Below, one piece after another: positions 1-11,973 of a stretch of DNA of 11,973 bases. How positions within the stretch are numbered: position 1 is the first letter of the stretch; the number at the start of each line of letters is the position of its first letter. A program made the translations under genes and the position numbers. The notes beneath the pieces are model-generated. The model had not been told where the DNA came from. It saw only the letters and a program-made list of their open reading frames with translations, and searched no databases. The stretch spans positions 416,713-428,685 of the forward strand of contig JAWQFM010000014.1 in assembly GCA_033442325.1 (NCBI GenBank). Direction: 5' to 3'. This DNA is from Salpingoeca rosetta. Lineage: Eukaryota; Protista; Choanoflagellata.

Positions 1-29
1 TTGTGTTCCTTCCATCATCACACTATCAG

Positions 30-890
<861 letters not shown>

Positions 891-1039
891 TGGCATACTC
901 AACCCGGCGATCAAAGGAAGATCGCGCACACATGCACAACATCCTCACAACACACATGCACACACAGCACCCTCACAACAGACCCACACTCGTTTTTTCT
1001 TGTGCTTGGTCTGTCGTGTCGCTGTGCGCTCTGCTTCAT

Positions 1040-1139: not shown

Positions 1140-1703
1140 TCGACAGCACCCCCACGACGGGCCAGCACAGACATACCACACAACAACGATCATGTTGGTT
1201 TACACCCATACACTACACTCCCTGCCTTTGTGTGCACTTTGTTTGCTGTGTACGTCTGCGGGTGTGTCTGTGTCGGCGTTCATTTACTTTGTGTGTTTGC
1301 GCGTGTGTGTTTGCGTGTGTGTGTGTGTGCGTGCGTGTGTGTGCGTGTGTGTGAAGGTGAAACAGCACAGCATGTGAATTAAATGTGGCAGGTGTACGCA
1401 CGCTTCTTCACGATGATGTGGAGCAAAGAGCGCCTGCTGTCGCGGCCCATGATAGAGTTGATCATCACCATGATCGTCTCCACAGCACCCCTGCAATGTG
1501 CGACGCCAGGTGAGCGACTCACACCCGATGACGAGGACAAGCAACATGCGCTCACGCACATGAAACACCTGCACGCACGCACACATACGCACACGCGCCC
1601 GTAAGCACGCACACACAACGATGTACACGTGCAAAGCATGCACCCGCGTGTACACAATGCCAACCTCAAACTCGCACTCGGTGTCACAATACCACAGACA
1701 CAG

Positions 1704-3781
1704 GCACATGAGGGAAACGGGCTCGCATGCGCACCAATCATCGGATGGCGATGGCAACAAGTGGTGTTACGTTGACGCCACGTGCCCCTCAGCCACCGTG
1801 GACAGCGACTTCCCAGCCCTGCACCGCGCGCCCTGTGGCCTGTTCCCAGACTGTACGGACTTCTACCTCACCCGCATCTGTGCCGTGGAGCAACCCGCGT
1901 GCGAGCACGGGTTCACACGCATCAACAACCGCTGCTACAAGGTGGCGACCACGGCATCGACTGCCGGCAATTCTCCGATCACCACATCCTTTGCAGGCGC
2001 TGTGGACGCGTGCAGCGTGGACAATGCGACCGTTGTTAGCCTGCACTCTCTGCCCGAGACGGAGAACGTGGTGCAGCTGCTGCGAGACGCCGGCGTGACC
2101 AGCGCCTGGATCGGCCTGCGCACCACAGAAAATGGGGATGTGGCGGGCGGTGTTGACTACATGTGGGTGGATGGCACCCCGTTTGGTGACGTGAACAGCT
2201 TGGGTACGTTTGCCAACTGGGCAGATGGCCAGCCCACCGCGCAGGGTGGCAAGGACGGCTGTGCGTATCTCGACCTGACCAAGGACGCTGCAACAGCAAG
2301 CAACAGCACGGGTGATGACAAGCGTGCTGCTGGCCTTTGGTATGATGACGGGGTGTGCACCGCCCAGCGCGCAGTCGTCTGCAAGAAGCTGTCACCGATT
2401 GTCACGCCATCGTGCGCCTGCACGGGGCAGACCAACAGCGACGGTGATGGTGGCGCATGTGGCACCTGGTGCTATGTGTCACAGTACTGCCCACGCGCCG
2501 TTGAGGACCAGGACAACGAAGGCCTCTTCTGGGCGATTTGCCCGCGGCACTTCCAGACATCAACGACTTCAACCATGCCTGCAAGCAGCACGGCGCCACC
2601 CGAGTCCACGACAGGCGGCACCACCACAACAGCGGCACCAACGTGCCATGAGATGGACCCTTCCACGTACACGCGGGACGATGGCACATGTGCGCAGTGC
2701 ACGACCACGGACGACTGTGACACCAACCAGGTCCTGCTTGGCGAGTGTGGCATGTTCACCACGCCCGTGTGCGTTGCCTGTGACAGCACGTGTGCCGCGT
2801 GCTCTGCCCTGGGTGCAGACAAGTGCACAAGCTGTGCTGATGGGTACGTGTGGTCGCTGGATGGCAAGCGCTGCGTGTCTTCGTGCCCGCTCGGGCAGTT
2901 TGCAGACACCTCAGCAGGGCAGTGCAAAATGTGCCACGACACCTGCGCGACGTGCGATGGAACAGCAGATAACGCGTGCCTCTCCTGTGCGCCGGCATCG
3001 AACCTCTTCCTGCAGCCCAACGACAACAGCGGCGGCGGTGGTGGTGACATGTCCCGGGCGCGTGGTGTGTGTGTCGCCGAGTGCAACCGTGGGTTCTTTG
3101 CGAACCAAGAGTCGCAGCGGTGCGTGGCATGCGCGTCGTGCAACAAGGACACTGATGGCAACGCGTTGTACGAGGTGACACCATGCACGGCGACGGCTGA
3201 TGCTGTATGTGCTCGCGTCACGGCGTGTGCAGAGGACGAGTATGAAACGGCAGCGCCCACGCCAACAAGCAACCGCGTGTGTCGGATGCTCACGCCGTGC
3301 AAGGCTGGTGAATATGAGCTGAAGGCTCCAACAACAACCACAGATCGAAAATGCACGCAGTGTGCAGCCGGCACGACAGACCTTGATCCAAACAGCATCA
3401 ACGCGTGCACGACCTGTGATGCTGGCACGTACACGCCGCCTGGCCACGTTGGCCCCTGTCCCAAGTGCCCTGCCGGCACTGCGGACGATGACAGCGACCC
3501 TTCCACACCGTGTGCGGCGTGCATGCTCGGCCAAACCTATGCAGCAGCAGAGGGCAGCCTGTCGTGCTCTCGCGTGGACATGTGCGCACCGGGCGAGGAG
3601 GAGGCGCTTCGCCCCACCACCACCCGCAACCGCGTGTGCGTCGCATGCACGATGGGGACGTTCAACGCCATTGGTGGCAACGGCACGCGCTGTGTCCCGT
3701 GGACCACATGTGGTGCGGGCATGCAACCGAGCAACGACGCCCCACCAAGCGCCTCACAGGACCGCACGTGCGTGCCGTGTG
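1704..3781 (+). CDS. Receptor long exon: WCYV module, C-type lectin-like domain (1900-2388), WCYV module (2413-2544), Thr/Ser linker, furin-like repeats (~2779-3133), TNFR-like repeats
   Basis: Open frame with CEHGFTRINNRCYK..CS..NATVVSLHS..E..WIGL..WVDGTP..NWADGQP..C..WYD..C..VVCKK (CTLD), CDSTCAACS..KCTSC..CHDTCATCDG..CLSC (furin-like) and PTPTSNRVC-type repeats. The start at the AG ending 1703 is tentative. Confidence 0.85.
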
Positions 3782-6700
3782 NNNNNNNNNNNNNNNNNNN
3801 NNNNNNNNNNNNNNNNNNNNNNNNNNNNNNNNNNNNNNNNNNNNNNNNNNNNNNNNNNNNNNNNNNNNNNNNNNNNNNNNNNNNNNNNNNNNNNNNNNNN
3901 NNNNNNNNNNNNNNNNNNNNNNNNNNNNNNNNNNNNNNNNNNNNNNNNNNNNNNNNNNNNNNNNNNNNNNNNNNNNNNNNNNNNNNNNNNNNNNNNNNNN
4001 NNNNNNNNNNNNNNNNNNNNNNNNNNNNNNNNNNNNNNNNNNNNNNNNNNNNNNNNNNNNNNNNNNNNNNNNNNNNNNNNNNNNNNNNNNNNNNNNNNNN
4101 NNNNNNNNNNNNNNNNNNNNNNNNNNNNNNNNNNNNNNNNNNNNNNNNNNNNNNNNNNNNNNNNNNNNNNNNNNNNNNNNNNNNNNNNNNNNNNNNNNNN
4201 NNNNNNNNNNNNNNNNNNNNNNNNNNNNNNNNNNNNNNNNNNNNNNNNNNNNNNNNNNNNNNNNNNNNNNNNNNNNNNNNNNNNNNNNNNNNNNNNNNNN
4301 NNNNNNNNNNNNNNNNNNNNNNNNNNNNNNNNNNNNNNNNNNNNNNNNNNNNNNNNNNNNNNNNNNNNNNNNNNNNNNNNNNNNNNNNNNNNNNNNNNNN
4401 NNNNNNNNNNNNNNNNNNNNNNNNNNNNNNNNNNNNNNNNNNNNNNNNNNNNACTTTACCAGGGTGTGCGATGACATTCACGACTGCCCGTCTGGGTCCT
4501 ACCAAGTCCACCCGCCCACGCCTGTGTCCGACAGAGGTGCGTGCGTGTGTGTGTGTGGGTGTGTGGGTGTGTGGGTGTGGGGGGGGGGGTTGACCCGCTT
4601 GATGCTGTTCCTTATTGCTGTTTGCCTGTTTGTTGCGTTTGTTTTGAACGCACGGGCAGATCGTACCTTGATCACACACGCTCACGCACACACTCTCACT
4701 CATCCACGCACACACACACACACACACACTCGCGCACACGAACACAAAATTGGTCATGCGCCCCATGCTGTGTTTCTGCCTGTTCCGCAGTGTGCGCTGG
4801 CCTGACCACTTGCGGGGAATATGAGGTCGTGGCGATGGAGCCCACGCCGACATCAGACCGAGGTGAGGTGAAGCAATGTTTTGTGCAGTGGCTGCACGCA
4901 CGAGAATGAAACCTGGCATAGCAGTGTGGCCATGTGCGCACTCACAACCATACACACACACATGCGCGCGCACGCACACGAACAACACCCCCTGTCGCGT
5001 ACCCACGCACACACACACACACATACACACACACTACATTACCCCATCCCTCCCCACATTGACAGTGTGCGAGTCGTGCGATGGCACGAGCGAGTACTTC
5101 AAGGAAGGCGAGTGCGTTGCGGTGACCGAGTGCCCGCCTGGTATGATCACGCTCGCTGATCCAACACCCTCGACGGACCGCACGTGCACGCGCTGCCCCA
5201 ACAAGCACTTCAAGGCCACAGCAGGGCAGGAGGAGTGCCAGCCGTGGACGGACTGTGTTGTTGGCGAGGTGGTGACAACCGCGCCAACAGCAACCTCCGA
5301 CCGCGTGTGCCAGCTGTGTGACCCCACATACAATCAGTATTCCAGCAACCCGACCGCCACGCAGTGCGAAAACGCAACGGTGTGCGAGCCTGGCACATAT
5401 GTCGACGTCCCTCTCACATCGACACGCGACCGCAAGTGTAAGCCGTGTCCGTCTGGCACCTTCAGCAACGAGGCCAACATGGCATCGTGCACACCCGTGC
5501 AGCCGTGTTCCGTTGGCTCTGGACTTGTGACGGCAGCCACACCCTCCACTGATCGCGTCTGTGCACCGTGCTCGCCACCGCACACGTTCTCCTCCACGCC
5601 AACACTGGAAGCGTGCGCGCCCGTGAGTGACTGTGCGCCCGGCTATGAAGAGGACACACCACCCACGCTCACCACCGACCGAACATGCACCCCATGCGAG
5701 GCCACGGTGACGTTCAAGGCGGAGAGCGGACAGGCAGCGTGCCAGAGCGTGAGTGCGTGCCCTGCTGGCCAGGAGGAGGACATTCCGCCAACAACATCCA
5801 GCGATCGTGTGTGCAAACCGTGCGGTGATGGCACCTTCAAAGCAGGGGAAGCAGGCATGTGTCAGCCGCACCGAGGGGTGTGTCAGCCTGGCACGCACGA
5901 GGTGACATCGCCAACCACCAGCACGGACCGCAGCTGTGAATCCTGTCTGGTTGAGAACAGCGAGTACCAGGACGAGCAAGGTGTGTATTTGTGTGTGTGT
6001 GTGTGTGTTTGTGTGTGCTTGTGTTTGTGTGTGTTTGTGTGTGCTTGTGTGTGTGTGTGTGTGCTCGTGTGTGCGCTTGTGTGTACTTGTGATCGTGCTT
6101 GTGTGTGTGCTCTTTTTTTTTGTGTGTGTGTGCATTTTTTTTGTTGTTACATGTAACTGTGGGTTTCTGCCGCTATTGTGCCACGTGCATGGATCGCGGG
6201 AGCAGAGACTCAAGTGACTCAGAGACCGCCAAAAACGTGCATTGCCAGTCCACTCACCATAACTTTCACCGCATCTCCCCACCGCTTCCCTTCTTGATGT
6301 TTTTTTTGTTCACAGACAAGAGCACGTGCAAAGTACTGACAACGTGTCGTCCCGGGTCGTACGTGAGCGTGATGCCGCTGCCAGCGCAGAACCGCGAGTG
6401 CACGGCCTGTCCCGCTGGTTCCTATTCCGACACCGAGAACGCAGCACAGTGCACACCATGTGGCGAGGGCGAATATCAGGACGCGCGCTCGAGTGTCAAG
6501 TGCCAGCCCGCGCGCGTGTGCGGCGTTGGCGAGTTTGTGTCTGCTCCCGCCACTTCTTCATCGGACACGCAATGCGGTCGCTGCGACGGCACCACGGAGT
6601 TCCAAAACGAACCGGGTACGAAACAGTGCAAGTGTGCATATGTGTGTGTGTGTGTGAAGTACGTGTGTGTGTTTGTTGTGCGTACATGTGTGTGTGTGTG

Positions 6701-9382
6701 AAGTACGTGTGTGTGTTTGTTGTGCGTACATGTGTGTGTGTTTGTTGTGCGTGCATGTGTGTGTGCGTGTGTGTTTGTTGTGCGTGCATGTGTGTGTTCG
6801 TGTGTGCGTGTGTTGGTCCTTGTGCGTGCATGTGTGTGTGTGTGTGTGCGCACTGCGCATGCCTGGTGGCTTTTAATTTGTCTCTCACAATCCACTACTA
6901 ATCTTTCCCTTGTTGTCTTCGTGTCTTGTTCTTCACCCCCCACCACTACCACCACACCACCACACCACCACACCACCACACCGCCTACCTGTAGACCAAA
7001 CCTCGTGCAAGCCCGTGCGCGTGTGCGGTTCGCTGGAGGAGCAAGTTGTGCCACCGACAGCTGTGAGCGACCGCGTGTGCCAGTGCAAGCTCGGCGTCGG
7101 TTACGTAGACAACGGCGCCACCGCGTGCACGCCCGTCTCCGTGTGCCAGTCTGGCCACGTGGAATTTCTCCCCGCCACGCGCACTTCTGATCGCGTGTGC
7201 GTGATGCGGGGCAGTGCGGGCTCGCTCCAAGTGCAGTTTCGCGCCGACTTTTCCATCCTGCAAAACGCGGAGGAAGAGGCGACGTTCCTTCAGCTGCTGT
7301 TCTCCGCATTGCGCAACACCACCCTCAGCGCACGTGGCGGCGTGCCTGCAGGCAGTGACGACGTGTACTTCAAGGGCGTGCTGTCGGCAGGCAGCATCCT
7401 GGCCGATGTGGGCGTGTCCAACGGCAGCCTGGTGCCCATGCTCCAAGGCGCTGTTGAGAGCGGTCATGTGGCGTTCTGGTGGCGCGCAAAGCAGCAGCGC
7501 TTTGTTGCTGTGCTGGCGGGGCCCTGTCCACCAGGTTACATCTCGCCCTCGGGCTCACGGCCAAACTGCACCGCGTGCCCCGCCAACACACACGTGCGTA
7601 CGCGGTGCTTGTAGGGTGGTGCGTGTGTGTGGGTGGGTATGTGCGTGTGTGTGGGTGAGAATGAGTGAGTGAGTGAGTGAGTGAGTGTGTGTGCGAGTGA
7701 GTGAGTGTTTGTGGAATGTGAGTGTGTGTGCGTGTGTGCGTGAGTGCGTGAGTGCGTGAGTGAGTGAGTGAGTTGTGTTTGTGTGTACGAACAAGTGTTT
7801 GTCCTCTGTTTCACATCTGGCATTTCTGCGTATTGCTTTTGACTTCCCACTTCTTCGTTTTTCACAAACCAGGCAAATGATGCGGCCACGGTGTGCACGC
7901 CGTGTCCTGATGGCTGGACATCACCCGAGGGCAGCGCTGACACAAACAACTGCCAGCCGCCTGTGACGGTGTCTCCCACGCCAACAACTACCCCGCAAGG
8001 TGACATTATTGTTGTGTGTTGATGCTCATGATGTTGGTGTCTGTGTTGAGGCTGATGTCTGTCGCAATGAAACGTGCGTTGGTGTTTCATTCCTCGGCAC
8101 ATTGTGCGCTTGGTTGGTGTTGTGCCTTTTCCTTGTTGAGCGGCGACCATCGCTAACGCTGCTGCTCTGTATCATGTCGCTGTGTTGTTGTTTGTAGGTG
8201 GCACGCGCTCCCCAGAGAAGTCCAGCAACACTGCCGCTGGCAACACGGGTCTCATTGTCGGCATCGTCGGTACGTCACGCAGTCATCAAAGTGGTGGTGG
8301 TGGTGGTGGTGGCAATGATGGATGGTGGATGGGAACGTGGAGGGGTTGATAGCGCTGCCCATGCATGCCGCATGCATGTGACATGCTTTGCCGTCTCTCA
8401 CATGACTGCACACACACACAGTTGGAGCACTGGTGCTTGGTGCGTGTGTTGTTGTGGCAGCCCTCATTCTCCGCCGTCGCCGTGCACATGTCCTGCAACC
8501 TCCCCGCAAGTCCCGAGGTGCGTCCGCGCACGTGTGTGTGTGTGTGTGTGCGTGTGTGTGTGTACATTGCGTGTGCGTGTGCGTAAATTGTGTGACTTAG
8601 CCGCACCTGTTGCACAGCGTGCATGCTGTTGTCATCCATACTTTGCCCTTGACATTTGCTAGCGTTGCAATGTCTCACGACGGCTTGTTCCTCGTCCCTC
8701 CACCTCTTCCACCTCTCTTCCCTGTCACCTTTTCACGTCCTGTTTAACAAAATCAACAGATGGCCAGCAAAGCGCATTCCACAACCCGCCGTATGAGGAT
8801 CCAACGTCGCTGACGCGTGGTGGAGATGCCGACACTGGCTACGACAACGTGCCTGGCTATGGCGAGGGAGACGGTGGCTATGACCATGTTCCCGGCATTG
8901 GGCCTGCGCTGTCCAACCCAACGTATGACACGGCGCTGTTTGCCAGCGCCGATCCGCCATACGACACGCTTGACGCCGCCCTCGACGAGGACGACAACAT
9001 GCAGCACGTGCACGGGTACCTCGACGTTGTTGGGTTGCAAGACCAGTGGTGTGGATACGGATGCCATTGTCGCAATGTGGTTGTTCTTAAGCATCCCCTT
9101 TTCCGTTCCAATCTTGGCCTTCCCCGTCTCCCTCTGTTCGTTGCCAACAATGTCCAATTTGCTGAAGCGCCTTGCATTCACGACTGGATCGCCGTTGAAC
9201 GCCAAGTACATTCATCTATTCATTGTCCACTGCTGTGGCATCTGGGAGGGAAGGCGATCGTTGCTTGGCTTTCACGAAAATCAATTGGAAATTTTCACGA
9301 GAACGGAAGAAGAAGGACCATGCCATCATGGTGTGTATGTATGCCAGGTGCTGTGGCCGTTACACTGTCTCCCCAAGAGTGA
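1704..9382 (+). CDS. Large single-pass membrane receptor/adhesion protein (C-type lectin-like + furin-like + TNFR-like Cys repeats + SEA-like + TM + Tyr-motif tail), whole gene model
   Basis: Exons ~1704-3781[gap], [gap]4453-4536, 4791-4862, 5066-5980, 6316-6615, 6995-7593, 7873-7999, 8198-8269, 8422-8517, 8760-(9382). All eight junctions after the gap are GT-AG and preserve frame and repeat motifs. The 5' start and exact C-terminus are uncertain. Confidence 0.85.
3782..4452. other. Assembly gap (671 N) inside the receptor gene
   Basis: N run; the same repeat type is encoded on both sides. Confidence 0.98.
4453..4536 (+). CDS. Receptor exon (3' part after gap): FTRVCDDIHDCPSGSYQVHPPTPVSDR
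   Basis: Repeat motif; donor GTGCGT at 4537, phase 1. Confidence 0.85.
4791..4862 (+). CDS. Receptor exon, one 24-aa repeat: VCAGLTTCGEYEVVAMEPTPTSDR
   Basis: Acceptor ttccgcag, donor GTGAGG; 72 nt, phase 1-1. Confidence 0.88.
5066..5980 (+). CDS. Receptor exon with 7 TNFR-like ~42-aa Cys repeats
   Basis: Acceptor ttgacag, donor GTGTGT; 915 nt, phase 1-1; C..G......PT.TSDR.C..C..G.F motifs. Confidence 0.92.
5981..6135 (+). repeat. Degenerate (TG)n intronic microsatellite
   Basis: TG-rich run directly after the donor site. Confidence 0.85.
6316..6615 (+). CDS. Receptor exon, Cys-rich repeats (DKSTCKVLTTCRPGSY...EFQNEP)
   Basis: Acceptor ttcacag, donor GTACGA at 6616; 300 nt, phase 1-1. Confidence 0.88.
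6632..6850 (+). repeat. TG-based intronic minisatellite with a 44-nt higher-order duplication
   Basis: gaagtacgtgtgtgtgtttgttgtgcgtacatgtgtgtgtg starts at 6656 and again at 6700; tttgttgtgcgt(a/g)catgtgtg occurs four times. Confidence 0.85.
6995..7593 (+). CDS. Receptor exon: two Cys repeats, SEA-like module, start of ephrin-receptor-like Cys repeat
   Basis: Acceptor cctgtag, donor GTGCGT (phase 0); Cys-free alpha/beta segment LQVQFRADF...LSAGSILADV, then CPPGYISPSGSRPNCTACPANTH. Confidence 0.88.
7618..7786 (+). repeat. (TG)n/(GAGT)n intronic microsatellite
   Basis: gagtgagtgagtgagt and tgtgtg runs. Confidence 0.85.
7873..7999 (+). CDS. Receptor exon: ANDAATVCTPCPDGWTSPEGSADTNNCQPPVTVSPTPTTTPQ
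   Basis: Completes the ephrin-receptor-like (GCC2/GCC3) Cys repeat; acceptor aaccag, donor GTGACA. Confidence 0.87.
8198..8269 (+). CDS. Receptor exon: stalk and start of TM helix (GGTRSPEKSSNTAAGNTGLIVGIV)
   Basis: Acceptor tttgtag, donor GTACGT; 72 nt, phase 1-1. Confidence 0.87.
8422..8517 (+). CDS. Receptor exon: rest of TM helix and basic stop-transfer (VGALVLGACVVVAALILRRRRAHVLQPPRKSR)
   Basis: Acceptor cacacag, donor GTGCGT; 96 nt, phase 1-1. Joined TM is LIVGIVVGALVLGACVVVAALIL followed by RRRR. Confidence 0.88.
8760..9382 (+). CDS. Receptor cytoplasmic tail exon with Tyr motifs (NPPY, YDNV, YDHV, NPTY, YDTL, GYLDV)
   Basis: Acceptor caacag in phase 1; acidic, Gly/Pro/Tyr-rich to ~9030. 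The frame stays open to TGA 9380-9382, but the part after ~9045 is doubtful. Confidence 0.75.
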
Positions 9383-10001
9383 GTGAGGGCTTGAGGGTGC
9401 TGTTGTGTGTTGTGGTGTGCTGGGTGCTGTGTTGTGGTGTTGTGTTGTGTTGTGCTGTGTGCTGTGTATGTGGAGGGGTCTTGCTGCAGCACCAACCTTG
9501 ACCAAAGACTGCATTGCACTGTCCACATGGCCAATTGGTTGTCCTGACTTCTTTGTGTGGCTTGGGTTTGTTGTCACACATAATGCTGTCATGGATATTG
9601 TAGGGGGTGCTACTGAACACACGCTTGGGAACTCCCATCGCGCCTGTCACGCCACGATACGCCACCGCTTCCTCCAGTAAGCACCACGACCACAAGTTAC
9701 ATGTCTTCTGGCACGCTCACTTGGGTTCACATCCATGATCCTATGATTCAGACGCGCACGCGCACGCAAACATACAACACATACACACGCCCATCACACA
9801 TGCACAAAGCTATTCACACATGCACTTGCATTCACCTTGCACTCGCTGGCAGCTGCGCTACTTGACACCGGCACATACACACACACACACACACACCGTC
9901 AGTGTCTACTGCATCCAGCTCAGCACATTTCACAGCCAGGTTCCTCTGTGGTCGTGTGCGATCGACGTGAGCATGGTGCTTGCAGCACAACTGCATGCCA
10001 A

Positions 10002-10029
10002 ACAACAACAGCAACAGCAGCAGCAGCAA
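10002..10029 (+). repeat. (CAA/CAG)n trinucleotide repeat
   Basis: caacaacagcaacagcagcagcagcaa. Confidence 0.8.
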
Positions 10030-10064
10030 CGCTCAGGCGCCCCTCGCGTAATCCACATTCATCG

Positions 10065-11707
10065 ATGAAACAAAGACAGCGCGAACAGCCATCAACACGG
10101 CTGCTATACTTGCTGTCCTCCAGTGCCTCTCTGAGTTGCGCAGCCCCACGAGCCAGGACGGCCCTGACCTGGCCTTTCGCTGCCTGCGCAGATCTTGATG
10201 CGTGCGCGTCCGTTGGGTGTGAACAGCACTGCGTGCGAACAACACTGCGTGTGCGGCACTTGCACGCCACACGCTAGTTTCATCGTGTCTTTCACTCTCA
10301 ATGAAACGTCAGCCTACTCTAGCACACGGCTGCGACAGGCAACCCCCACCTCCACGTTCAGCATCCCCAACACCGCAAGCGTGTGGCAAACCATAGCCGT
10401 GACATTTACAATTGATGAGCGCTGCCGATGCCAGCACCAGCGACCGCGCATGCAGCCACCATGACATCCTAGTCATGGGAAAGACCCCGTGGTGTACACG
10501 TGCGCCTCCGGTATCGTCATTTACTACAACACCACATCCAGCAGCACGCCCACCATTCCCTTCACATTGACCCCGTTCATGTGCGCATGCCAGGCTGATC
10601 AGACCTACACCGACACGGAGCTGGCCTGCCGCGACATCAGCGAGTGCAACCCAGGCGCGGTTGAGTGCGCATGTGTCGGCGAGTGGGTTGGCCCGATGTG
10701 CAGTGATGACACCAACAGGCCGCCAGAACGCATCTCCCTCGGCACCACGCGCGTGCCAGAGAACAGCTTCCCGCTGCCCCTCATCACTGTCCCTGTGGAT
10801 GGGTCGGCCATCGAGGCTGCTGTGTGTGCAAAAAAACACCGGCGCCATTGCCCAGCTGTTGGCTGACTTTCTTGTGCGTGTCAACGTTGAAGATACCAAC
10901 TACGCGCCAACAGCCCTGCTACCTGATACCGCCAGTATTGCGGAGAACACGCCTATCGGCACCACCGTGGCCCACATTACTTTTGTGAATCTCAGGCAAC
11001 GCACCGTACAGCGACGCGAGCAACACTGGCTTTGAACAACCTGTGCGTGAGCTCGTACATGCATGCTTGTGTGTGTGTGTGCGTATGTGTGTGTATGTGT
11101 GTGCGTGTGTTTGTGTGTGTGTGTGTGTTTATGTGTATGCGTGTGTGCGTGTGTGTTTGTTTGTGTACATGTTGCTTTTTTGTGCATGGGCATGTGCTGA
11201 ACGCGTTGATGCCAGTGCGTGCTTGTGTTTGTGCACGCAAACACTTTCGGCACTCATTCGTTCGCTCAACATCCACCTGAAATCCGCCCGCTCACCACCT
11301 TCTTCAGAACACGACCTTTGCTCTACTTTGTCGTGGACGATGCTGGCGAGGTCTCGTTCGTTATCGTTCACGACAGGGCCGGCGATGGATCTGGCGGCCA
11401 AATTAACATCGAACTCGACGCCCCAGGTAATGCAGCCACCTGTTTGCTTGCATGCAAGAGAGAATGAGCTTGGGTATTTGAACGCGAGTGCTTGAACTTG
11501 TGTGCTTGAACTTGGGTACTTGGCAGGTTACGCATCGCTACCCTCGCAGGTGTTTGAAATACACTCCATTCAACAAACGCTCACGTGAAGGTTTCCTTGC
11601 ACCACACGCTGTTGACTGTTACAGATCTCATTGGCACGGGCGTGGACCTCGTGCTCGGAGATGATCCAGGACGATACAAGGACCGAAGCACCTGCGAGCG
11701 ATCAACG
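10065..11707 (+). pseudogene. Disrupted EGF/cadherin-repeat cell-surface protein gene (pseudogene or error-rich assembly); segments ~10065-11042, 11308-11426, 11625-11707
   Basis: EGF-like CADLDACASVGCEQHC and CRDISEC..CACVGEWVGPMC; cadherin-type DDTNRPPERISLGTTRVPENS and VNVEDTNYAPTALLPDTASIAENTPIGTTVAHI. Reading through needs several +1 frameshifts and a bypass of TGA 10462-10464. Splice sites 11043 GTGCGT, 11307 AG, 11427 GTAATG, 11624 AG and 11708 GTAAGA are intact. Confidence 0.65.
11060..11170 (+). repeat. Degenerate (TG)n intronic microsatellite
   Basis: TG-rich run downstream of donor 11043. Confidence 0.85.
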
Positions 11708-11973
11708 GTAAGAGGAACAGCATCATCTTTTCTGCGCCTGTCTGGCCTGCTTTGATGTGTCTTATCACAGCTCCAAACACCGCCACAGTCACAAGCTGCG
11801 ACGAAATCCCTCCTCCCCAATGGCGCGTATGCTCAACTCCGACTCACACATCCAACCAAACATCATCATGCGTGTCACATCGTCACATCATCACACCACA
11901 CACCACCATCACTCGTCTCTGCAGAGCACGTCCGATTGCTACACCTTCGATCCAAACACCATGACTGGCTACT

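Follow-up and report, generated by a model that had tools for sequence, protein, structure and literature searches.

What does a long, Cys-rich, multi-exon gene of the choanoflagellate Salpingoeca rosetta encode, and what might its product do at the cell surface? The question is raised by a stretch of 11,973 nucleotides of contig JAWQFM010000014.1 (assembly GCA_033442325.1, positions 416,713 to 428,685 of the forward strand; “the window”), whose plus strand carries, between ~1,700 and 9,050, a series of Cys-rich open stretches separated by introns full of (GT/CA)n repeats. A preliminary description, made from the letters of the window, had read them as one spliced gene for a lectin-tipped receptor that lacks a kinase. 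We find that the full-length form of a large S. rosetta gene lies on another contig (“C17”) and that window 1545–9046 is a second, 98–99% identical copy of its 3' part. The best overall explanation, to which we give a probability of roughly 60%, is that the locus is a truncated copy of a gene for a large surface binding receptor that would be coupled to PTB, SH2 or AP-2 adaptors and would act in uptake or adhesion signalling.

A word search with the first large open frame retrieved the hypothetical protein PTSG_05162 of S. rosetta (1,552 aa; P0001), which is 100% identical and carries the UniRef name “C-type lectin domain-containing protein”. The exons that we derived by hand from the window letters are the same as those of this database model, and all splice sites checked (exons 1698–9046) are GT..AG and in phase, in agreement with the gene model first proposed. 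The literature searched does not name PTSG_05162, and searches combining choanoflagellates with C-type lectin/TNFR, SEA domain or NPxY returned nothing on its family. In the sequence searches the exons were used one by one, and full-length queries were database proteins only (P0001, P0011 and others). The features of the locus are listed below, with the evidence for each in brackets (CTLD, C-type lectin-like domain; TM, transmembrane).

1545–1697 (+): intron-like stretch that opens the duplicated block (the annotated model uses its terminal acceptor, CCACAG; 100% identical to C17; sequence upstream of 1545 unrelated)
1698–3781 (+): large exon running into the gap (open frame 1564–3781; 100% identical to P0001); the next six entries lie within it
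1701–1742 (+): divergent patch, the first of the contents of the large exon
~1741–1881 (+): mini-module 1, with the WCY motif (family alignment A2)
~1897–2391 (+): CTLD (Lectin_C, E 4.6e-10; family alignment A2)
2410–2541 (+): mini-module 2, CxCxG..C..WCY..C..C, then a Thr/Ser/Pro linker (family alignment A2)
~2650–3130 (+): EGFR/furin-like Cys repeats (match to EGFR domain IV, E 1.2e-4)
3130–3781 (+): TNFR-type repeats of the large exon (TNFR_c6, E 1.8e-10)
3782–4452 (no strand): assembly gap of 671 N (content judged from the C17 copy)
4463–4536 (+): exon, part of a TNFR-type repeat (acceptor ctttaccag genuine and the same in C17; splice sites checked)
4791–4862 (+): exon, part of a TNFR-type repeat (splice sites and phase; identical in C17; present in P0001)
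5066–5980 (+): exon with about seven TNFR-type repeats (TNFR_c6, E 8.4e-28, five stretches; PDB matches to RANK, CD40 and TNFR2)
6316–6615 (+): exon with TNFR/GCC-type Cys repeats (splice sites; present in P0001)
6995–7593 (+): exon with two TNFR-type repeats, the SEA-like module and the first GCC-type half-repeat (TNFR_c6, E 5.7e-9; model and fold searches)
7873–7999 (+): exon with the second GCC-type half-repeat and a Thr/Pro-rich linker (splice sites; aligns with orthologues)
8198–8269 (+): exon with a Ser/Thr linker and, from ~8248, the start of the TM helix (hydropathy peak; splice sites)
8422–8517 (+): exon with the rest of the TM helix (8422–8471), the RRRR stop-transfer sequence (8472–8483) and the start of the tail (hydropathy; splice sites)
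8760–9046 (+): tail exon up to the end of homology (translation; motifs common to S. infusionum, H. gracilis and P0015)
within 8760–9046 (+): tail motifs, namely FHNPPY (8777–8794), GYDNV (Tyr 8840), GYDHV, NPTY (8915–8926), PPYDTL (Tyr 8960) and GYLDV (Tyr 9017) (translation)
9047–9199 (+): non-homologous 3' end (the annotated model splices from ~9048 to 9167 and ends in CALHSRLDRR and a stop)

The identity of most of these parts is secure. The Lectin_C family (PF00059) matched window 1888–2400 with 40.6 bits against a cut-off of 22.6, and a structural model of 1702–2560 (286 residues, pLDDT 63.8) showed a CTLD fold with Foldseek TMt of ~0.8 to CD23, langerin and DC-SIGNR; this model confirmed the CTLD only, not the mini-modules or the furin part. 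The rod is carried by TNFR_c6 (PF00020) matches on three exon stretches, and the exon 5066–5980 matched PDB sequences of RANK, CD40, DcR3, TNFR2 and p75NTR (E 1e-8 to 1e-5). For 2650–3130, phmmer found residues 496–590 of Drosophila EGFR (Cys-rich domain IV), with no Pfam match at E up to 1; the “furin” part probably consists of EGFR-like Cys repeats. The locus has one hydrophobic segment (Kyte-Doolittle 3.07 over 19 residues), split over two exons and followed by RRRR, and a tail whose ~95 homologous residues include 7 Tyr and match no Pfam domain; neither the tail exon nor the downstream frames gave a Pfam match to a kinase domain, the tail being ~95–120 residues long. The parts list of the preliminary description (C-type lectin domain, EGFR-like and TNFR repeats, a ferredoxin-like module of SEA type, a single TM helix and a Tyr-rich tail) was therefore right, as was its view of a membrane protein without a catalytic domain; the protein is of type I.

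Do the parts on the two sides of the 671-N gap belong to one gene? The preliminary description had allowed for two genes separated in the gap, of which the upstream one would encode a secreted lectin/Cys-repeat protein and the downstream one a protein with the TM helix and tail. The second copy of the gene, which a genome search found on the minus strand of C17, spans the position of the gap with 1,038 equivalent bases and zero N. This stretch extends the big exon by 501 nt; then come a 248-nt intron, a 142-nt exon and a second intron of 157 nt (most of it within the gap). Its coding part amounts to 643 nt, or ~214 codons of TNFR-type repeats. Both exon pieces match TNFR_c6 (E 2.1e-12 and 2.4e-10), and the last intron ends at ctttaccag, the acceptor annotated at window 4462. 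Because the C17 copy reads through the gap with in-phase TNFR_c6 exons, the locus is one continuous gene with ~214 residues hidden. In PTSG_05162 the junction across the gap is artificial, with an annotated donor at 3767 that results from skipping the gap. A coding “FTRVC” frame just after the gap, which would make the acceptor at 4462 wrong, was rejected, as C17 has stop codons upstream of this acceptor. Nothing favours two genes except that the gap exists and that the annotated junction across it is artificial; against them stand the in-phase exons of the same repeat type in C17 and the orthologues from transcriptomes, which are single complete open reading frames (ORFs). The two-gene explanation is refuted for the gene family, and for the window we give it next to no chance.

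How does the window copy relate to the full-length gene? By blastn, C17 aligned with window 1532–3781 (98.3% identity), 4453–8420 (98.7%) and 8409–9046 (93%), and nothing aligned elsewhere. The homology is limited to 1545–9046, and the flanks upstream of 1545 and downstream of 9046 are unrelated. C17 continues upstream of the block with ~10 kb of additional exons, which encode PAN domains among other parts and are colinear with residues 76–1300 of the Salpingoeca infusionum orthologue (P0021); the C17 locus as a whole is colinear with P0021 residues 76–2785, and ~1,300 residues stand before the CTLD in the C17 copy and the orthologues. At the other end, the C17 ORF runs 21 codons past the end of homology in the same exon (PQHDDHDGDYKLDLNESDVDA, then a stop), with QDQPQHDDHDGDYKLDLNESDVDA and a stop as its C-terminal end. 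The end of the gene, first placed at 9030, is thus close to the true homology end at 9046, but the last 10 annotated residues are not homologous to the parent gene. Counting the residues that the gap hides, the window copy encodes ~1,756, starting with the first mini-module. The two copies are distinct: the tail exon differs from C17 at 14/285 nt (10 synonymous versus 4 nonsynonymous codon differences) and therefore does not represent the same reads placed twice. Between 4464 and 6614, the four exons show zero substitutions over 450 codons, and the introns show microsatellite indels. This identity beside a divergent tail exon suggests patchy gene conversion between the paralogues.

Two observations concern the 5' side of the block. 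In C17 (C17:1098900-1099190 region, L019/L020, reverse complement 16815-17250) there is a 0.49-kb tandem partial duplicate of window 1743–2024. At its junction there is microhomology (GGACAA), and the homology between C17 and the window contig (“C14”) has its 5' end there. Splicing from a donor CAG|GTGTCG in the first C17 copy to the acceptor CCACAG, which follows the shared 155 nt, would excise the duplicate in frame, and the duplicate may be an intron created by duplication. In the window, 1413–1509 holds an ATG-started frame (MMWSKERLLSRPMIELIITMIVSTAPLQCATPG) with a hydrophobic core that ends at a strong donor, GTGAGC. It is a possible first exon of the truncated copy, but we did not adopt it, as its phase misfits the acceptors at 1698/1704 and fits only a weak one at 1636/1637.

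Is the architecture unique? An exhaustive search with the unit of mini-module, CTLD and mini-module returned only 12 proteins at E up to 1e-10, and those that cover the whole unit are choanoflagellate proteins or metagenome/transcriptome records. They include:

Salpingoeca infusionum: P0021, 3,073 aa, complete
Hartaetosiga gracilis: P0022, 2,987 aa, complete
Helgoeca nana: P0128, 2,095 aa
Codosiga hollandica: P0038 and P0130, 1,269 and 1,293 aa
Stephanoeca diplocostata: P0011, 2,192 aa
Tara Oceans and other metagenomes: P0012 and P0015, 2,404 and 3,247 aa

Animal proteins, such as mannose-receptor-like ones, matched the CTLD part only. The earlier statement that no animal protein is known with this exact architecture is thus borne out, but the uniqueness it implied is not, since at least five other choanoflagellate species have the same layout, none of these proteins being characterised. 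The order of modules in the family is a signal peptide, two Kre9/KNH Ig-like domains, three PAN/Apple domains, GCC-type (Ephrin_rec_like) repeats, a SEA-like module, two unnamed beta-rich modules, mini-module, CTLD, mini-module, EGFR/furin-like repeats, a long TNFR rod, a second SEA-like module with GCC repeats, the TM helix and a tail of 100–220 residues. In the complete orthologues, which have the signal peptide, the CTLD lies at ~1,380–1,495 of ~3,000 residues and is followed by the TNFR rod. This places the lectin domain at mid-protein; it is not the “head” or tip that had been proposed. These proteins define a conserved, uncharacterised receptor family that is present in both choanoflagellate orders, and for any use of the gene the C17 locus or the full-length orthologues are preferable to PTSG_05162, which as annotated is a truncated, gap-spliced model.

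In the family alignment A2, examined by inspection, the S. rosetta CTLD has QPT at the EPN/QPD position and W-Y-D-D in place of WND. Across the family the former position reads QPT, EPS, EPA, APA, FPT, LSP, YPQ or YPR. WND is not conserved, and the Cys of the CTLD long loop is missing from some members. Judged from these residues, the CTLD is not a canonical sugar binder, and the glycan sensing first suggested is probably wrong. Every family member has the two small Cys-rich mini-modules on either side of the CTLD (window 1741–1881 and 2410–2541), which follow the pattern C-x-C-x-G ... C-x-x-W ... W-C-Y-[VT]-S-x-x-C-P-x-A ... [LM]-[WF]-x-x-x-C and gave no Pfam match. Their PWCY and W-x-Y-C motifs recall kringle and FNII domains; a kringle/FNII-like nature is a guess from these motifs. 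Just N-terminal to mini-module 1, C17 has two copies of an unnamed module of ~130 residues (L019:2907-3701:- and L019:4060-4296:-) with equivalents in P0003, P0004, P0011 and P0021; its motifs include GxWxGxY..., FxHGxYC and GITDRxFxRE, and it gave no Pfam match.

Close to the membrane, window 7204–7521 encodes a module that was modelled, using a five-sequence alignment (A1), as a beta-alpha-beta-beta-alpha-beta fold with pLDDT 72.6. Its structural neighbours include the membrane-proximal domain of SorCS2 (Z 8.0), the SEA domain of a transmembrane protease (2e7v, Z 6.5), the Gpr126 ectodomain (Z 5.9) and MUC16 SEA5 (Z 5.7). A protein atlas search with the module gave a best score of 0.87 to bacterial hypotheticals and was uninformative. 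The sole invariant Gly of A1 is followed by Ser (Gly63-Ser64; window 7390–7395) and lies in the predicted beta2-beta3 hairpin, the one in which SEA domains undergo autoproteolysis. Three craspedids share the sequence L-S-x-G-S-I, and that of P0012 is A-G-S-I-V-V; SEA domains with G|S[V/I]VV have been described in craspedid semaphorins (PMC8011033). From the model, the label “SEA-like” is plausible but unproven. The predicted topology is the one expected of the SEA-like module in the preliminary description; the module is not strictly juxtamembrane, as two GCC-type Cys half-repeats and a Thr/Pro linker intervene.

What could read the tail? FxNPxY is the classic LDLR-type endocytic signal that is read by PTB adaptors and is not an SH2 site. 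It occurs ~25 residues past the membrane in four proteins, as FHNPPY, FFNPTY, FQNPLY and FTNPMY, and as FHNPLY in the C17 copy. Also common to the four are a second NPxY, a repeated G-Y-x-[D/E/H/N]-V and a C-terminal G-Y-L-[D/H]-V, in keeping with the Tyr-rich tail first noted. Being near the membrane and conserved in orthologues, FxNPxY is by its sequence a likely internalisation/PTB-docking motif. A strict ITAM (immunoreceptor tyrosine-based activation motif) is absent from the tail, the closest pair being YDNV-x9-YDHV with Val at +3 and a spacing of 9 versus 6–8. Abundant phosphotyrosine machinery is established in choanoflagellates, and S. rosetta has 19 PTB/PID matches over the Pfam cut-off, which are possible readers of the tail. 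One open frame (C8:1434295-1437096; L026:796-3597:+), of 934 residues without interruption, has a PTB/PID domain at 372–478 and a tyrosine kinase domain at 528–799 (E 3e-79). This PTB-tyrosine kinase is of HMTK type and, judging from its domains, is a candidate reader of the FxNPxY tail. The HMTK-type PTB-kinase of Monosiga binds NPxY peptides such as FTNPVY (PMC3082566).

Taken as a surface binding receptor, the protein might work as follows. The ligand bound by the large ectodomain would be a particle or a surface, for example prey bacteria, the substrate or a second cell, and the rod of roughly 20 Cys-repeat modules would keep the binding domains tens of nanometres off the membrane. The SEA-like module with its conserved Gly-Ser may self-cleave and serve as a mechanical break point. 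On the inside, the membrane-proximal F-x-N-P-x-Y would dock PTB proteins, either endocytic adaptors or choanoflagellate PTB-tyrosine kinases, and the G-Y-x-x-V and Y-x-x-L repeats may serve as AP-2 or SH2 sites. In this way, ligand binding would be coupled to uptake or to adhesion signalling by a protein that has no kinase of its own. The tail of this family shares short motifs (FxNPxY, YxxV/L) with animal endocytic and phagocytic receptors, S. rosetta PTB-kinase fusions could read them, and the family is a genetically tractable candidate for how kinase-less receptors signalled before animals.

Several findings weigh against this explanation. For the SEA-like module, the ferredoxin-like fold is very common, and the Z scores of RRM, Cas6 and GGDEF folds are in the range of those of SEA domains; Pfam SEA (PF01390) found no match on window 6877–7611 or 7180–7520, and the PDB profile search that used A1 had no result under E 0.7. 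The canonical EPN/QPD and WND residues for Ca2+ and sugar binding are absent from the CTLD across A2, and short Tyr motifs easily arise by chance in acidic, Gly-rich tails. In the full-length copy, C17 has a 1-nt deletion relative to window 3107, in the two-A run of CCAAGAG (AA versus A), which shifts the frame of the big exon; the cause may be a run-length (homopolymer-type) error of 454 sequencing, or the frameshift may be real. The remaining points concern the window copy itself and raise the question whether it makes any useful protein, as the locus might instead be a dead partial duplicate or a mis-assembly and PTSG_05162 a gene-prediction artefact. A signal peptide is missing from the copy, whose annotated start (MCDAR) is arbitrary, and so are the ~1,300 N-terminal residues; tblastn of P0001–P0004 against 20 kb of C14, with 14 kb sequenced upstream of the gap, found no upstream exons. 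A foreign 3' end replaces the last 21 codons of the parent, outside 1545–9046 the flanks are unrelated, and the annotated donor at 3767 serves only to skip the gap. The 42-nt patch at 1701–1742 is only ~50% identical to C17, with loss of a Cys and a Trp of mini-module 1 (SDELSQRGGSCDAW replaced by HMRETGSHAHQSS), and the preceding 155 nt and the following sequence are identical to C17; the patch could be filler DNA at the duplication junction or low-quality sequence. In addition, runs of 5,362 N (C14:411351-416712, ending at the window start), 100 N (1040–1139) and 671 N (3782–4452) surround or interrupt the locus, the first 1,039 bases of the window recur 9 kb away, and the assembly is a 454/Sanger hybrid (PMC4054682). 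Against a dead or spurious locus, however, its 1,518 aligned codons contain no stop or frameshift and every splice site is intact. The 26 synonymous and 12 nonsynonymous differences from C17 over these codons (pN/pS 0.15) reject neutral drift of one copy alone at P 8e-5, and the divergence of the tail exon shows that the same reads were not placed twice. On the sequence, pN/pS argues for a protein from the window copy and the truncated ends argue against it. We regard a locus without a useful product as somewhat unlikely.

There are two other ways to read the function of the protein. In the first version proposed, the protein is a lectin-tipped glycan or bacteria sensor of immunoreceptor type, in which binding by the CTLD would lead to phosphorylation of tail Tyr residues by recruited Src-type kinases and then to SH2 signalling. 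The conserved Tyr motifs, some of them resembling [S/T]-x-Y-x-x-V of ITIM/ITSM type (immunoreceptor tyrosine-based inhibitory and switch motifs; e.g. TGYDNV, SGYQDV), the PTB-kinase fusions of S. rosetta and the abundant phosphotyrosine machinery known from choanoflagellates fit such a sensor. Its position and residues do not, as the CTLD lies mid-protein and lacks the canonical Ca2+/sugar residues across the family; the tail has no strict ITAM (Val at +3, spacing of 9 residues), and its best-conserved motif, FxNPxY, is an endocytic/PTB signal, not an SH2 site. We therefore consider this version unlikely. Alternatively, the protein might be mainly a structural component of the surface coat or an adhesion protein, like a transmembrane mucin, with SEA-like break points and with tail motifs that direct only trafficking and turnover. 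Each full-length protein has two SEA-like modules with adjoining Thr/Ser/Pro linkers, PAN/Apple and Kre9/KNH domains are typical of adhesive surface proteins, and choanoflagellate Sema-FN1 provides a precedent for a SEA break point (PMC8011033); however, long mucin-type repeats are missing, and the strong conservation of several Tyr motifs beyond one sorting signal suggests more than trafficking. A purely structural role is, in our estimate, quite improbable. A bolder form of the uptake reading would make the ~3,000-residue proteins a pre-animal receptor of the CED-1/Draper/LRP type, in which prey or partner cells bind the PAN/CTLD ectodomain, the SEA-like module self-cleaves as a force-sensitive link, and the tail with its FxNPxY and G-Y-x-x-V motifs recruits choanoflagellate-specific PTB-tyrosine kinases that phosphorylate it; the half-copy in the window, of recent origin, could then be an expressed variant truncated at the N terminus, such as a decoy or a constitutive form. 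This is a long shot; if true, an immunoreceptor-like relay was assembled before animals.

Which known systems does the preferred receptor, coupled to adaptors, resemble? By analogy, the closest are CED-1/Draper and the LDLR family. CED-1, Draper and MEGF10 are type I proteins with a long disulfide-repeat rod, no kinase, a membrane-proximal NPxY that is read by a PTB adaptor (CED-6/GULP) and YxxL-type motifs. The S. rosetta family appears to follow the same plan, as a kinase-less type I protein with a Cys-repeat rod and a tail of NPxY and Tyr motifs; unlike theirs, its rod is of TNFR/furin and not EGF type, it has PAN, Kre9/KNH, CTLD and SEA-like modules in addition, and no sequence homology was detected, so that the analogy is one of logic only. 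LDLR has FDNPVY where the family has F-x-N-P-x-Y, ~25 residues after the TM helix; unlike LDLR/LRP, the family has no LDL-A or YWTD modules and many more Tyr motifs in the tail. Binding to FTNPVY, a peptide derived from LRP3, has been reported for a choanoflagellate PTB domain (PMC3082566).

In sequence and in structure, the CTLD unit is matched best by the mannose receptor family (MRC1, PLA2R, DEC-205, Endo180), whose members are type I endocytic receptors with Tyr-based tail motifs and a kringle-like FNII domain before CTLD1 that recalls the WCY mini-module. They have 8–10 CTLDs versus one here and lack the TNFR rod and SEA-like modules, and the full-length orthologues gave no Pfam match to the ricin-type CysR domain or FNII. 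With the TNF receptor superfamily (p75NTR, CD40, RANK, TNFR2) the family shares the type of Cys-rich repeat (PF00020), but it has roughly 15–20 repeats in a row versus 1–6, and its tail gave no Pfam match to a death domain or any other domain. We know of no TNF-like ligand in choanoflagellates. With SEA membrane proteins (MUC1, MUC16, TMPRSS, Gpr126, Sema-FN1) and SorCS2 the family may share a membrane-near ferredoxin-like module with Gly-Ser in the beta2-beta3 hairpin; it differs from them in having no Pfam SEA match and a motif G-S-I-[LIY]-A, not G-S-V-V-V, and its Z of 5.7–8.0 is not above that of unrelated ferredoxin-like folds. Choanoflagellate receptor tyrosine kinases with TNFR/furin ectodomains exist; they use the same kinds of Cys-repeat module in the same organisms, but the family lacks their kinase domain and has instead a tail of 100–220 residues with short motifs. 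In PMC4342544, a legend to a figure of ichthyosporean and corallochytrean kinases does no more than define TNFR and CLECT as names of domains.

Outside the gene, the antisense and neighbouring open frames of the window gave no credible Pfam matches. The same holds for both strands of 9400–11973, where the best match was to Cadherin_4 (E 0.015) on 10571–11032 of the plus strand. At the other end, window 1–1039 is 100% identical to G000:C14:407690-408728, which lies 9,023 bases upstream on the same contig, and this repeat around the gaps looks like a redundant contig placement.

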